Origin: Pecten maximus
Lineage: Eukaryota
NCBI RefSeq assembly: GCF_902652985.1
Contig: NC_047016.1
Coordinates: 31,310,001-31,374,000 of the forward strand
DNA length: 64,000 nucleotides
Reading direction: 5' to 3'
The notes beneath the pieces were generated by a model that saw only the letters and a program-made list of their open reading frames with translations, made no database searches and had not been told where the DNA came from. Shown piece after piece: positions 38,601 through 41,600 of this stretch; position 1 is the first letter of the stretch; every line of letters starts with the position of its first letter. The translations under genes and the position numbers were made by a program.

Positions 38601-41600
38601 TAGGAAGAAGAAAGTTGTTAAGAAAGAAGAGAAAAGATAAGCTCCCAAATTTAGTCGCCTCTAACGATCATGCAATGGGGGCAGCAGGTACAATTCTTAC
38701 GCCCTACCTGCAGGGCTGTGGTAGATGTAGGGGTAGATGGTAGATGTAGGGGTAGATGGTAGATATAGATGTAGATGGTAGATGTAGGGGTAGATGGTAT
38801 ATGTAGGGGTAGATGGTAGATGTAGGGGTAGATGGTAGATGTAGGGGTAAATGGTAGATGTAGGGGTAGATGGTAGATGTAGGGGTAGATGGTAGATGGG
38901 GAGAGATGGTAGATGTAGATGGTAGATGTAGGGGTAGATGGTAGATGTAGGGGTAAATGGTAGATGTAGGGGTAGATGGTAGATGTAGGGGTAGATGGTA
39001 GATGTAGGGGTATATGGTAGATGTAGGGGTAGATGTAGGGGTAGATGGTAGTAGGTGGGGTAGATGGTAGTGTCGGGGTACGATGGTTGTCGGGGTACGT
39101 GGTAGACTGTCGTGGGTCTGTAGTGGGGTGTGGTGATGTGGGGTTACTGGTAGATGTAGAGGTGATGGTAGATGTAGTGGGGTACTGGTTGATTGTAGGC
39201 GGGTAGATGGTAGATGTGGGGTCCGGATGGTAGGTGCATGTGTGTGGGTGATGGTGATGTGGCGGTGGGTTCAGATTGTCGGGTAGATTGTCGTGTAGGG
39301 GTGCTATGGTAGATGTAGGGGTAGATGTGTGTAGATGAGGTGGTAGTATGGTAGATTGTAGGGGTGTGGTGTGGATGTAGGGGGTCGATGGTAGTGTGGG
39401 TGTGGTAGTGTAGGGGTAGTGGATCGCTGTGGGGTGCTGGTTGTGGTGTGGTCGCTTGGGTAGATGGTAGAGTAGGGTAGATGGTAGATGTAGAGGTCGT
39501 GGGTAGATGTGGGGGTGATGGTCGGTGTGGGTAGTGGTCTGTAGTGTGGGGTACATGGTAGATGTGGGTGTGTGTGTGGTGATGGTGTGTAGGGGTAGAT
39601 GGTACATGTAGGGTCTGGTAGCTGTAGTGTGTGTGGGTAGACTGTAGATGTCGGGTAGATGGTTAGATGTAGGGTAGATGGTGATGGTGGGGTTCATGGT
39701 TTGGTTTTGTCGGGGTTGAGGGGGGGAAGGGGGGGGGGGGGGGGGTTTGGGCGGTGGTACGATGGGTAGATGTTTAGAGGTGATGTGGGTGCTCGATTGG
39801 TAGATGTAGGGGTTGATGGTAGTGCTGGTGGGGTATGGTGATGTGTTGGGGTTTTGGTCTCTTCGGTTGGTCGTGCGGTAGTGGTTTGGGTCTTTTTGGT
39901 GTTTTTGGGGGTGATTGGTTTGGGGTGGTATGGTTTGTGTGTGTGGTGTGTAGGGTTTGAGGGTAGTGGTCTGGTGTTGGTTGTTGTGTGTGGGTTTTAT
40001 GGGTTGTTGTGGGGTGGGTGTGGGGTGGGTTGGGGGTGGTTTTGTGGGGTTGGGTGTGTTGGGGTGGGGGTGGGGGGGTTGTGGGGGTTGTTGGGTTGGT
40101 GTTGGGGGGTTTGGGTTGGTTTTGTTCGGTGTGGTTTGGGGGTTGGGGGTTGGGGTGGGGGTTGGGGTTTGTGGGGGGTTTTGGGGGTTGGGGGTGGGTG
40201 GTGTAGTGGTTGGGGGGTAGTTGGGGTGGGGTATGGTTTGTTTGGGGGTGTGTGGGGTTGGTGGGGTGGGTGGGTGGTTTGTGGGTTGGTTTTTAGGGGT
40301 TGGGAGTGGGTGATGGGGGTTGTGGTGTTTTGGGGTAAAAGGAGGTGTGGGGTTGGGTGTGTTAGGTGTTTTTTGGGGTTTGGGTGGGGGGGAGGTGTGT
40401 GGGTTGGGTATTTGGGGTGTGGTAGGGTATGGTGTGTGGGGGGTTTTGGGTTTGGGAAAGTGGGGGGGGGTATTAGGTAATTGATGGATATGGGGAAGGC
40501 GTAGGGTTAAATATGGGCTGGTAGGAGGGGGTTAGGGTAGGTTTGTGTAGGGGTAGGTTTGTTGGGGTGGTTGGGGTTGTAGAGGAAAAAATTTAAGGCG
40601 GAAGGTGAGTAGAAATGGGTGGGTATGGTAATGAGGGTTTTGAGGGTTTTGGGGAGGTAGTAAGTTTTTAGTGGGGTAAGGTAGAATGGGAGGGGTTGGG
40701 GGGAGGGGTAATGTAGGGTATATGGGGAGTGGGTTTGGTGAGTTGGGGAGGGATGGGGAATTGGTAGGGGGATTTGGTCACCTACCCGGGGGTCCTGGTT
40801 TTACTGGCCACCCTTTGGGTCTTCCCTTTTAAGTTAATTCCTGGGGTATGTTCCGGCTGTGGGCCCGCCTTTTAACTGCAGCCCCGGGCGTGTTTTCAAC
40901 TGGGTCTGTGGGGAAGCTTCTTCTAGTGGGTAAATGGTTTTGTAAAGAAAGGTTATTTGGGGTTGCCCTTTGGGTTGGGTAAAGGATGGGGGGTTTGGGT
41001 ATGTAGGTGATGTAGGGGTAGATGGGGATGGGGTTGGTGTGGGGTATGGTGTGGGGTTGTGGGGGGGGGTGATGGTTTATGGGTGTTAGGGGATATGGGG
41101 TGGTAATTGGTAGATAGGGTATTGGTGTGTAGGGGTTAGTTGATGTGGGGTTGGGTAATGGGGTTTGAGGGCCTGGGGGGTGGTGGGTGGTTGTTAGTTG
41201 GGGTTGGGGTGTAGTTGGGCCCGGGTTTTCCCGGGGTTGGGCCGGGGTTTTGGGTGGGGAGGGTTTTGGTATCTGTCGGCGGGCCTCGGGTTTGCGGCGT
41301 TTGGGGGTATTTTTTTTGGGGTCTGGGGTTGTTGGGGCCCGGCCTTTTTTTTTTCCGGGGGGTCCTGGGGGTTGTTTTGGGGCTTTGGTTGGGGCGTCGC
41401 GTGGGTGGTGGTGGGGGGTTTTAAACGGGTCTGGTCTCCTGTGGTGGGCCGGTTGCGTTTTTTCGCTTCCTGGCCTTTGGGGGTTGGTTCCCGGGGGTGT
41501 GGGAAAGGTGCTTGGTGTGGTTTTGGGGGGGTTTGGGGGCGCCTTTTTGGGTGTTGTCGGGTTGGGTTTTCGGCCCGGGGCGGTGGGGGCGGGTGTGTGG

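Follow-up and report, generated by a model that had tools for sequence, protein, structure and literature searches.

The window analysed here, a 64,000-nucleotide stretch of the Pecten maximus genome, carries on its minus strand a 73-base segment (38644-38716) that an earlier sequence-only reading had described as a compact RNA module at the 5' end of a composite retroelement, possibly a ribozyme. The segment raises three questions: which element it belongs to, whether it is a functional RNA, and what it might do. They bear on the long-standing problem of how non-LTR retrotransposons and SINEs without an upstream promoter acquire a precise and heritable 5' end. To our knowledge, internal promoters and HDV-like ribozymes are the two known solutions.

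A pectinoid SINE and its head

The 73-base stretch is almost certainly the 5'-terminal head of a LINE-mobilised non-autonomous retroposon, the pectinoid MESC or LP SINE. Alignment of copies placed the whole SINE, with head, CT-rich leader, putative decayed tRNA-related part, body and tail, at 38191-38717 on the minus strand, a length of approximately 525 bp. Genomic copies that were fetched aligned to query positions 1-514/521 with 85-95% identity. The family is young, numbers thousands of copies in the genome and is a very abundant scallop retroposon; the conserved 17-mer motif of the head had 6,498 matches in the 918-Mb genome, compared to 2 for the reversed control. The element is sharply bounded on its 5' side, where the copies have unrelated flanks. 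Many copies are 5'-truncated, and about a third of genomic copies are truncated inside the head, which indicates that the head is not needed for integration itself.

In the window, the element lies next to a 19-mer satellite, (TGGTAGATGTAGGGGTAGA)n, located at 38719-39686 by Tandem Repeats Finder. The first G of the outermost helix does adjoin this satellite, as previously observed; the contact is incidental, as about 35 other 5'-complete copies among the fetched loci have unrelated upstream flanks. The microsatellite is only the insertion site and lies outside the element.

At the opposite end, the 3' tail AAACAAAAAACAAACCAAACAACC (38191-38214, minus strand), a degenerate (AAACC)n, was recognised from the end sequence of other copies. 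Most copies end in ...AAACAAAATAAACCAAACCAAACC, directly followed by the duplicated target site. Target site duplications of 7-13 bp together with an (AAACC)n tail were found in about a dozen of the fetched copies, and AATAAA precedes the tail in most copies. The 73-nt head is followed by a CT-rich stretch of ~68-85 nt, which was read directly from the sequence at 38576-38643 (minus strand) in the window copy. It includes a TTTT run (38632-38635) that would terminate RNA polymerase III; this internal terminator and the AATAAA before the tail in most copies make transcription by RNA polymerase III unlikely. A putative decayed tRNA-related region was assigned to 38511-38574 (minus strand) by analogy with Figures 1 and 2 of PMC4758252 and from the box-B-like string GGTTCTGTCCCC. 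Neither ARAGORN nor Rfam identified a tRNA in the SINE, as expected for a decayed head.

By description, the element matches the LP-SINE (pectinoid MESC) reported in 2016 by Matetovici et al. (PMC4758252), which has a head of ~68 bp whose function was left open. The likeness covers the scallop host, a length of about 520 bp, a head of ~68-70 nt at the extreme 5' end, variable target site duplications and AATAAA before the tail. The order of the CT-rich stretch, putative decayed tRNA-related part, body and short-repeat tail also agrees; the CT-rich region behind the head measures 88 bp in the published element. According to that study, the head is common to other mollusc SINEs and to the 5' ends of the LINEs Nimb-17_LMi, I-3_DR and RTE-9_CPB, and it can replace the tRNA head in oyster SINEs. 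It was treated there as a sequence homology and a possible LINE promoter, whereas secondary structure, covariation and viral copies are not part of that paper.

The sequence homology of the head is thus already known, having been published as the 'LP' head, and the module cannot be called uncharacterised in this respect; the description remains valid for its structure, which the 2016 paper does not give. The double-pseudoknot fold, the covariation and the viral 3'-UTR copies are new here. In the literature searched on xrRNAs and ribozymes together with retrotransposons, Nimb or LP-SINE, no description of the fold was found. The link between the head and LINE 5' ends is literature-based and taken from PMC4758252 only. 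No RT or EN ORF was present behind any head in the metagenome contigs, where the sole Pfam match was a host C2H2 zinc-finger gene, or in the two best-scoring other head families of this genome.

Fold and covariation of the head

The head very probably folds as two tandem H-type pseudoknots occupying 38644-38717, with one unpaired A (38717) in front; all coordinates below refer to the minus strand. In the first pseudoknot (PK-A), the 5' strand of helix S1, GCCC (38713-38716), pairs with GGGC (38701-38704) through G38716-C38701, C38715-G38702, C38714-G38703 and C38713-G38704, leaving U38712 as loop L1. Within the S1 hairpin loop, the 5' strand of S2, GCAGGUA (38705-38711), forms seven Watson-Crick pairs with UACCUGC (38684-38690). 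The purine-rich linker GUAAGAAUUG (38691-38700), with the conserved core AGAAU, is loop 3. Across families, PK-A is built from S1 and S2, separated by a 1-nt loop, and a conserved linker of the UAAGAAU type. The minus strand reads exactly as written in the sequence-only reading; its S1, L1, S2 and linker were confirmed, as was its CCCA/UGGG stem around a UCG/CGA hairpin (38679-38676 with 38647-38644; 38667-38665 with 38657-38655).

Addition of a further helix, S4, makes the 3' half a second H-type pseudoknot (PK-B). The S4 strand UGC (38681-38683) pairs with GCA (38671-38673), and within the S4 hairpin loop the S3 strand CCCA (38676-38679) pairs with UGGG (38644-38647). The third loop of PK-B holds the near-invariant hairpin GUCG-UAAGAGG-CGAC-UAAA. 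In the window copy it corresponds to the conserved 17-mer UCGUUAGAGGCGACUAA (38651-38667), comprising hairpin P5 with a 7-nt loop and then CUAA. Here P5 is UCG/CGA, compared to GUCG/CGAC elsewhere, and its loop has a minority U instead of A. The geometry is that of a textbook H-type pseudoknot, with 1 nt crossing an S2 of 6-7 bp, a junction of 0-2 nt, and an A-rich loop of 9-10 nt over an S1 of 4-5 bp.

Single-sequence folding was unremarkable (MFE -22.5 kcal/mol, z = -0.35). Thermodynamics alone is therefore uninformative, and the support for the fold is comparative: compensatory changes in about 20 sequence families support every helix. In a first alignment of 90 homologues, with a model built on S2, S3 and P5 only, 82.6% of cells were paired versus 69.4% after shuffling, and double changes occurred in 281 versus 103 cells. 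The covariation score was 0.309, compared to 0.135 for shuffled alignments (0/500 shuffles) and 0.03-0.105 with the partners slid. With a second model built on S1, S4 and P5 only, S2 and S3, which lay outside the model, paired in 76% and 78% of cells, respectively, and the covariation score was 0.330 versus 0.149 shuffled. S4 paired in 81% of cells when absent from the model and in 92% when included. In a helix-swap test on 21 family representatives, S2 strands gave -9.0 kcal/mol when matched and -5.2 kcal/mol when swapped (p < 5e-5); the corresponding p values were 0.0009 for S3 and 0.004 for S1.

The sequence variants follow the same pattern. S1 occurs as CCCCG/CGGGG, CGCCC/GGGCG and CCUU/AAGG, among others; at its innermost pair, 29-32 sequences have GC and 21 have CG. 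S2 changes on both sides at all seven of its pairs, with GUGGGU/ACCCAC, UGGGCA/UGCCCA, GUGAUGG/CCAUCAC, GUAGCAC/GUGCUAC and UGAAGGU/AUCUUCA found in other families. Variants of S3 include CCUGG/CCAGG, CCUCCU/AGGAGG, AACCCU/AGGGUU, CCCAU/AUGGG and CUCAC/GUGGG, those of S4 include UCCG/CGGA, CUCG/UGAG, CAGG/CCUG, UGUA/UGCA and AGC/GCU, and the P5 stem covaries as GAUG/CAUC and CUCG/CGAG. In the linker, each of the bases A21, G22, A23 and A24 is shared by at least 90% of the 25 seed sequences.

The alignments and the swap test thus bear out the proposal of a conserved cis-acting RNA module with covarying S1 and S2, and the head is an RNA element, not a relic. Its location at the 5' end was also correctly recognised: in four independent families, sequence conservation reaches background level within 1-2 nt ahead of S1. 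The most frequent base is A at position -1 (79%) and C at position -2 (59%). The fold is defined well enough for the design of disrupting and compensatory mutants.

Occurrence in other invertebrates, viruses and bacterial records

The module heads unrelated SINE families in other invertebrates; the GTCGTAAGAGGCGACTAA motif does indeed stand at repeat 5' ends there, as the sequence-only reading had stated. It is also present in the sense-strand 3' UTRs of four different (+)RNA viruses. The viral contig L198 encodes an RdRP_3 ORF and a noda-like capsid, and its module begins 5 nt after the last ORF. In L197, which encodes a tetravirus-type capsid, the module begins 10 nt past the stop codon. L200 contains an RdRP_3 ORF, and L196 encodes an S-domain coat protein and carries two tandem modules whose S2 helices differ by compensatory changes. 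The P5 loop UAAGAGG was kept in every true viral match when the search left the loop free. A search for relatives of the two largest viral contigs yielded only one truncated contig, without a 3' UTR. The ~75-nt module is a cassette common to many SINE families, several unrelated RNA viruses and, according to PMC4758252, different LINE clades, and it documents traffic of RNA modules between retroelements and RNA viruses.

Most 17-mer matches in bacterial 'genomes' are chance occurrences that lack the module; 15 were found, compared to ~140 expected by chance under uniform base composition. Among bacterial records, true matches were encountered once in a scaffold of a Solemya velum symbiont and once in a Roseivirgaceae MAG, where a 3.8-kb contig begins with a copy truncated to its 3' part. 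An oversized 9-Mb MAG has at least 10 further copies, located in AT-rich contigs. We read these copies as host DNA rather than as bacterial elements.

RNA viruses without a DNA stage keep the module, which implies that it acts as RNA and via machinery common to animal cells. Action at the RNA level through host machinery is accordingly likely. The viral copies argue against both a pure DNA promoter and constitutive self-cleavage, and the probable role of the head is to protect or define RNA ends, not to cleave itself.

The promoter reading merits consideration, as a portable promoter is what a promoter-less SINE needs. Transcription-factor sites within the head would act as DNA, forming an internal RNA polymerase II promoter that places the start at the A before S1. 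I-factor and jockey-type LINEs have internal promoters, whose position the +1 to +73 location of the head resembles, and the A at -1 and C at -2 resemble an initiator. A LINE promoter was also the suggestion raised in PMC4758252. However, helices kept by compensatory changes indicate constraint on RNA, identical conserved bases are kept by the viruses, and a C at -2 would not be inheritable if transcription began at the A. We therefore regard a promoter as an unlikely explanation of the head, while a promoter function alongside the RNA function could exist by analogy with Pr77.

Known RNA classes and possible functions

Rfam searches covered 16 kb and 551 nt of the window, nine viral or 'bacterial' contigs and 14 metagenome contigs. 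None gave a match to the module, and what they did return was palindromic miRNA-like noise outside it.

Self-cleavage was the leading idea of the sequence-only reading: a ribozyme cutting just 5' of S1 would free the element from read-through co-transcripts. HDV-like ribozymes do this for R2, RTE and L1Tc, and the head resembles them (R2, RTE and L1Tc Pr77/L1TcRz) in its 5'-terminal position, size of ~75 nt and two pseudoknots. They are likewise swapped as a module between LINE clades and non-autonomous partners, and they address the same problem, that of setting the 5' end within a co-transcript. Invariant unpaired nucleotides in a complex double-pseudoknot fold, and a start at the first bases of the element, would suit a ribozyme, as would an occurrence in both cellular and viral sequences, known for several ribozyme classes. 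The modular sharing among LINE clades and SINEs also recalls Pr77/L1TcRz (PMC4758252).

However, the topology is not HDV-like. The pseudoknots of the head are tandem, not nested, and only 8-9 nt, which form S2, separate the S1 strands, too few to accommodate P2 and P3. P3/L3 is missing from this interval, and a catalytic C context is not identifiable. Mapping the head by hand onto the HDV-like fold, in which the pseudoknots are nested and the P1 5' strand at +1 pairs with a strand beyond P2(5') and the P3 hairpin, led to rejection of this fold. HDV/CPEB3/drz covariance models gave no match at E ≤ 10 (551 nt; 16 kb), and at the same threshold there was none to hammerhead, twister, pistol, hatchet or other models, in agreement with the earlier impression that the HDV, hammerhead and twister consensuses do not fit. 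Moreover, a constitutive cut in the linear (+)RNA virus genomes that carry the module in their sense-strand 3' UTRs would remove the 3' end needed for replication. The ribozyme reading is thus disfavoured, and we consider it improbable.

Two partial resemblances were noted among ribozymes. As in pistol, a 5' hairpin loop pairs downstream after an A-rich linker (UUAAAUAG in pistol, UUAGAAUAG in the head); unlike pistol, the head has no P2 strand between linker and pseudoknot strand, no P3 and no G-U cleavage junction, and pistol cuts near its 3' part, whereas the head would cut at its 5' edge. In family B, a CUGAUGA string ~40 nt behind the head looks like a hammerhead core; no hammerhead model matched it.

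An exonuclease-resistant RNA (xrRNA) is the model we put forward, with reserve, as the leading candidate among the possible mechanisms. The head would act as a mechanical block to 5'->3' exoribonucleases, so that transcripts starting anywhere upstream, for example by host-gene read-through, would be degraded as far as the foot of S1, and the trimmed RNA would then be protected. An element lacking a promoter would thereby acquire a 5' end that is both defined and heritable, and viruses would keep a stable piece of their 3' UTR. If true, such trimming by a host exonuclease would explain how the head can replace a tRNA head in SINEs. The module is a compact double pseudoknot of 75-80 nt that begins 1-2 nt from the 5' end of the element in the four families. 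The low likelihood of RNA polymerase III transcription, noted above, is also in keeping with the model. SINE copies are present in RNA libraries within longer assembled contigs that continue upstream of the head, as this model would have it. Known xrRNAs (flavivirus class 1/2, plant-virus class 3 and coremin) are likewise compact and pseudoknotted, measure 45-80 nt and occur in viral 3' UTRs, and their structure marks the 5' end of the surviving RNA. They lie at or near the start of the 3' UTR, sometimes in tandem (PMC11702639), as do the viral modules, one of which is a tandem pair.

Several points weigh against an exonuclease block. Most H-type pseudoknots do not stop Xrn1. Known xrRNAs have a ring or slip-knot topology, which the head would have to adopt on top of its covarying helices, and no sequence or covariance-model match to the known xrRNA classes was obtained. 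In the viruses, no more than ~60-150 nt separate the module from the 3' end of the contig, which would leave any protected fragment very short. Copies truncated inside the head, about a third of those in the genome, integrated nevertheless. The 4-bp P5 followed by UAAA recalls hp1 plus spacer of the coremin type, which consists of a 4-bp hp1 with a YGAD/YGNNAD-type loop, a spacer of 8-10 nt and then hp2 (PMC10520033). Membership in this type was rejected, as the loop UAAGAGG falls outside YGAD/YGNNAD and P5 is enclosed by S3 with no hp2 after it.

Taken as a whole, the explanation that combines a SINE head, a double pseudoknot, an RNA-level function and an exonuclease block is the best we can offer; it is quite possible, if short of probable. 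The literature searched contained no xrRNA in a cellular retroelement. It is a more doubtful, though attractive, suggestion that the head is a new class of autonomous RNA device, and ideally the first xrRNA of cellular retroelements, exchanged horizontally between Nimb/RTE LINEs, SINEs and (+)RNA viruses across Metazoa. If the head does block exonucleases, retroelements would have a third answer to the 5'-end problem, and the range of xrRNAs would widen beyond viruses to include cellular mobile elements.

A conserved factor, such as the ribosome, a translation factor or a tRNA enzyme, could equally well bind at the near-invariant 17-mer. More broadly, the head could serve to bind factors or ribosomes in the manner of an upstream pseudoknot domain or a tRNA-shaped 3' CITE. 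Its two coaxial pseudoknot stacks and the hairpin with the 7-nt loop would then contact a universally conserved host component, with a ribosomal subunit, eEF1A/eIF or a tRNA-handling enzyme as candidates. Viruses would gain stimulation of translation or replication by their 3' UTR, LINEs cap-independent translation of ORF1, and SINEs the delivery of their RNA to ribosomes making the reverse transcriptase of the partner LINE. A conserved trans partner is suggested by the near-invariance of the 17-mer and of the AGAAU linker in different phyla and in viruses. Upstream pseudoknot domains of plant (+)RNA viruses and T-shaped 3' CITEs are also built of tandem H-type pseudoknots, or of a pseudoknot and a hairpin, near 3' ends. 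The viruses with the module belong to tombus-, noda- and tetravirus-like groups, in which 3' translation enhancers or tRNA-like ends occur (PMC7749636). Stacked together, S1 and S2 measure 11-12 bp, as long as a tRNA acceptor/T arm, and the exchange with tRNA heads in oyster SINEs (PMC4758252) is in line with this. However, the Rfam tRNA, TLS, PTE, BTE and TSS models gave no match and ARAGORN was negative, SINEs encode nothing for translation, and binding by itself gives no reason for a fold that begins with the first bases of the SINE. We therefore hold this reading to be rather unlikely. Binding of the translation apparatus or self-cleavage, if true, would in either case define a new class of structured RNA.

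The same stack could instead imitate a tRNA for nuclear RNase P, which would cut just 5' of S1 and thereby generate the 5' end of the element. Pseudoknotted viral tRNA-like ends are RNase P substrates, the coaxial stack of S1 and S2 is followed by a single-stranded stretch, and the precise 5' end of the SINE would fit such a cut. However, PK-A has no T-loop or elbow motif, and no tool gave a tRNA-like signal, whether the Rfam tRNA/TLS models or ARAGORN, which was likewise negative on the viral contigs and the family-C loci. Nuclear cleavage would be irrelevant to cytoplasmic RNA viruses. Mimicry of an RNase P substrate is thus highly improbable.

In its mobility, the head resembles s2m, a mobile RNA module of unrelated viruses that is also present in invertebrate genomes. 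It shares no sequence or model similarity with s2m, the upstream pseudoknot domains or the 3' CITEs, and we know of none of these as a retrotransposon 5' head. The covariance model of the head can be used to annotate thousands of repeats now labelled only 'LINE-derived head'.

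The window module and the retroposon it heads

On the minus strand of window positions 38644-38716, S1 (GCCC/GGGC) is followed by a single U and by S2 (GCAGGUA/UACCUGC), which has seven Watson-Crick pairs. A 10-nt purine-rich linker and a CCCA/UGGG stem enclosing a UCG/CGA hairpin were also read from the sequence. The sequence and all helices drawn in the sequence-only reading are thus present as described. At window position 38663, the second loop position of the conserved hairpin P5 is U rather than A (UUAGAGG); this variant belongs to a small minority (3 of the first 100 genomic copies listed).

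The module alone showed no unusual stability (MFE −22.5 kcal/mol, z = −0.35 against dinucleotide shuffles). Since minimum-energy folding is blind to pseudoknots, the reality of the fold was judged by comparison. Copies were sought throughout the P. maximus genome (918,306,378 bases in 3,983 contigs). The module with its immediate surroundings (81 nt) gave at least 314 candidate matches, and the 40 that were scored were 96-100% identical. In copies retrieved with 1.5-kb flanks, similarity always began at (A)GCCCTGCAGG and extended for ~514-521 nt, and the flanks upstream of the head were unrelated to each other. The copies ended in ...AAACAAAATAAACCAAACCAAACC, immediately after which the 7-13 bases preceding the head recur; these repeats are target-site duplications. 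Many copies were truncated at varied points within the first 45 nt. The sharp start, unrelated flanks, target-site duplications and 5' truncations establish the element as a LINE-mobilised, non-autonomous retroposon (SINE) of ~525 bp, located at window ~38191-38717. The motif TCGTWAGAGGCGACTAA occurred 6,498 times in the genome versus 2 occurrences of the reversed control. A TTTT run lies inside the SINE 80 nt from its start and AATAAA precedes the tail in most copies, which disfavours transcription by RNA polymerase III.

This architecture was described in exactly this form in the scallops Chlamys farreri and Mizuhopecten yessoensis (Matetovici et al. 2016, PMC4758252). The published SINE is 520 bp long, and its 68-bp 5' end resembles the initial 68 bp of Nimb-17_LMi, a LINE of the locust; behind this head come 88 bp of CT-rich sequence, a region derived from a tRNA and the MESC domain, and a poly(A) signal stands before the tail. 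Related heads were reported on SINEs of Littorina, Haliotis, Ostrea, Saccostrea and a fruit fly. The elements were named 'LP' (LINE promoter) SINEs, in which a tRNA head is replaceable by this head. The authors left the function of the head open, drawing a parallel with the L1Tc promoter/ribozyme Pr77, and proposed no structure for it (PMC4758252). No later papers on the LP head were found in the literature searched. The scallop copy therefore belongs to an already described SINE family, and the homology of head sequences across phyla has likewise been published.

The SINE sits inside a ~10-kb array of the 19-mer TGGTAGATGTAGGGGTAGA (window 32782-43220), which is merely its landing site. The array is well formed at 32782-33934, 38719-39686 and 41923-43220, towards its ends, and its interior is strongly degenerate and G-rich, with GC skew up to +0.8. 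Just outside the satellite lies a near-perfect 80-nt palindromic hairpin (43830-43909). Several miRNA models, unrelated to one another, matched it below threshold on both strands, and it has the look of an inverted repeat of the MITE type, not of a miRNA. Elsewhere in the genome, at ~21.098-21.104 Mb of contig C18 (loci L018 and L019), full-length SINE copies with identical flanks are spaced ~1,003 bp apart, which is a tandem array of SINE plus flank.

A double pseudoknot with covarying helices

Inspection of the families added S4 as a fourth helix, whose two strands bracket the 5' strand of S3. This makes the 3' half of the module a second H-type pseudoknot (PK-B, S4 and S3) with P5 in its third loop, behind the pseudoknot formed by S1 and S2 (PK-A).

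A swap test compared the duplex energy of 5'- and 3'-strand regions taken from the same or from different families among 21 family representatives, with regions set by conserved anchors and not by complementarity. For S2, the mean was −9.0 kcal/mol for matched and −5.2 kcal/mol for swapped strands, and none of 20,000 permutations was as good; the test was also significant for S3 (p = 0.0009) and S1 (p = 0.004).

Two structure models were used to align homologues. Model R1 contained only S2, S3 and P5 (90 sequences aligned). In this alignment, 82.6% of cells paired compared to 69.4% after shuffling, and both sides had changed in 281 cells versus 103. The covariation score was 0.309 against 0.135 shuffled (0 of 500) and 0.03-0.105 for slid partners. 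Although absent from the model, S1 and S4 paired in 73% and 81% of cells, respectively, with several compensatory pair types. Conversely, model R2 contained only S1, S4 and P5 (78 sequences), and the unmodelled S2 and S3 paired in 76% and 78% of cells, with double changes in all seven S2 pairs and in four of the five S3 pairs. Its score was 0.330 against 0.149 shuffled (0 of 500) and at most 0.092 when slid. Covariation was thus found for both S1 and S2, the helices of the originally proposed pseudoknot.

Sequences collected by the 17-mer of P5 (window 38651-38667, minus strand) have an invariant P5 stem by ascertainment; in variants found by model the stem covaries (GAUG/CAUC, CUCG/CGAG). The loop UAAGAGG was retained in every true viral hit obtained with a search pattern that left the loop free.

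The loop lengths are those of a classical H-type pseudoknot: a single nucleotide crosses the 6-7-bp S2, 0-2 nt lie at the junction and a 9-10-nt A-rich loop crosses the 4-5-bp S1. Outside the helices, bases are nearly invariant at the loop 1 U, at AGAA of the linker and at the UG and UAA(A) that precede and follow P5. Two conserved bases are paired: the first G of S2, which is invariant, and the G preceding P5, which makes the outer P5 pair. These data demonstrate that the module is a selected RNA structure. No description of a double-pseudoknot fold with covariation support was found for it in the literature searched. The sequence-only reading of a conserved, uncharacterised RNA device was therefore largely right as regards a covarying RNA module, but the head had been recognised by sequence homology in 2016.

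Module copies in other animals, symbiont assemblies and RNA viruses

A 17-mer scan of public metagenome contigs returned at least 120 contigs. Among the matches listed, all except one carried recognisable module parts, mostly in the same arrangement and with differing helix sequences; the exception (L095) was rejected as a chance bacterial match. The module-bearing contigs are AT-rich and carry host-type genes, e.g., for a C2H2 zinc-finger protein, and no reverse-transcriptase ORF lay behind the head in those examined. We interpret them as DNA of invertebrate hosts within symbiont metagenomes, bearing SINE-like families. Together with the LP-SINE paper, they bear out the earlier statement that a related motif occurs at repeat 5' ends in other invertebrates. 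In four families, conservation fell to background level 1-2 nt before S1; the module is therefore consistently 5'-terminal, as had been surmised from the window copy.

One SINE family of gutless-worm-type metagenomes (L065:866-1008, L110:777-923, L076:120-258) has a (TAAG)n microsatellite plus ~35 nt inserted in the PK-A linker, with S1 and S2 intact on both sides. In another, family C (L139, L090, L100, L128), a tRNA-like 5' half (box-A-like, …GGTAGTCTAGTGG…) lies within 5 nt of the head. ARAGORN called no tRNA on these loci; by sequence likeness, a putative head-plus-tRNA arrangement recurs outside scallops. The scallop genome holds two further head families (L213:6951-7031 and L214:7018-7097), both of which outscore the MESC SINE against the cross-species model. 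The L213 head is followed by a (GGGTCA)n microsatellite.

Module hits in 'bacterial' genomes were mostly chance matches or apparent host contamination. A 537-kb scaffold of the Solemya velum gill symbiont (G001) contains a single complete module (L194:6908-6986 = G001:C4:518908-518986), ~1.1 kb past the last recognisable bacterial gene (DUF6394), with DsrE further upstream. This copy probably represents DNA of the bivalve host that became joined to the scaffold, or else a transfer. In a Roseivirgaceae MAG, a short contig (L188) carries a truncated copy and begins with downstream sequence related to that of the Solemya locus. A 9-Mb 'Sedimenticola' MAG (G002) contains at least 10 copies of several subfamilies (L189, L184, L204-L210) on AT-rich contigs with MITE-like palindromes, and seems to be contaminated by DNA of its animal host.

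The 17-mer was also present in five IMG/VR contigs, all five with the full 5' pseudoknot and with the module in the same sense as the ORFs. In L198 (4,633 nt; RdRP_3 polymerase and nodavirus-type capsid), the module begins 5 nt past the last ORF, and its end lies 58 nt short of the end of the contig. L196 (6,138 nt; S-domain coat protein and a 1,217-aa ORF) has two tandem modules at its 3' end (L196:1-152, minus strand), the second cut by the contig end; their S2 helices (GUGAUGG/CCAUCAC and GUGGUGG/CUACCAU) differ by compensatory changes. L197 and L199, from two samples, encode a tetravirus-type capsid (Peptidase_A21) with the module 10 nt after the stop codon, and in L200 it lies ~70 nt behind an RdRP_3 polymerase. 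Some viral copies have S3 absent or displaced, and PK-A, linker and P5 are constant. Judging from these sequences, an origin by chimeric assembly or as passenger fragments is unlikely, because four different viruses carry, at a constant location, four different S2 helices in which 6-7 of the 7 pairs are standard (in two of them Watson-Crick throughout).

Function of the head

Retroposons carry the module at their 5' terminus, viruses in the 3' UTR. It does not depend on proteins of the element itself, since its users include Nimb LINEs, RTE LINEs, SINEs whose tails differ, and RdRp viruses. Its occurrence in RNA viruses points to RNA action via host machinery; no description of either was found in the literature searched. 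A DNA promoter alone therefore cannot explain the conserved bases, and the partner must be the RNA itself or something common to animal cells. An internal promoter is improbable as the main function but may coexist with one at the RNA level.

The self-cleaving ribozyme preferred in the sequence-only reading proved the less likely option. With a constitutive cut at the 5' edge, a linear viral genome would lose its 3' end, and the module fits neither HDV-like, pistol nor any other Rfam ribozyme model; for these two reasons we consider self-cleavage improbable. No Rfam family of any kind matched the module, a point not found stated in the literature searched. RNase P mimicry appears highly improbable.

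We tentatively favour the possibility that the head is an exonuclease block. Xrn1-type trimming would turn any read-through transcript into an RNA with a defined 5' end, 1-2 nt before S1, which the head would then protect; such a start is what the genomic copies record. A block of this kind would explain the success of the SINE without a polymerase III promoter, and how the head substitutes for a tRNA head. In RNA libraries, SINE copies lay within longer contigs continuing upstream of the head, although processing is not visible in contigs. Against this reading, ordinary H-type pseudoknots are no barrier to Xrn1, a ring topology of the fold would be hypothetical, the module is unlike any known class of exoribonuclease-resistant RNA (xrRNA), and the P5 loop violates the coremin rule. 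The near-invariant 17-mer equally resembles a factor-binding site. The main rival to the exonuclease block, less likely than it, would be a ribosome- or factor-binding, tRNA-shaped element. Elements of this kind are found close to the 3' ends of tombus-like viruses and in front of the tRNA-like ends of viral RNAs.
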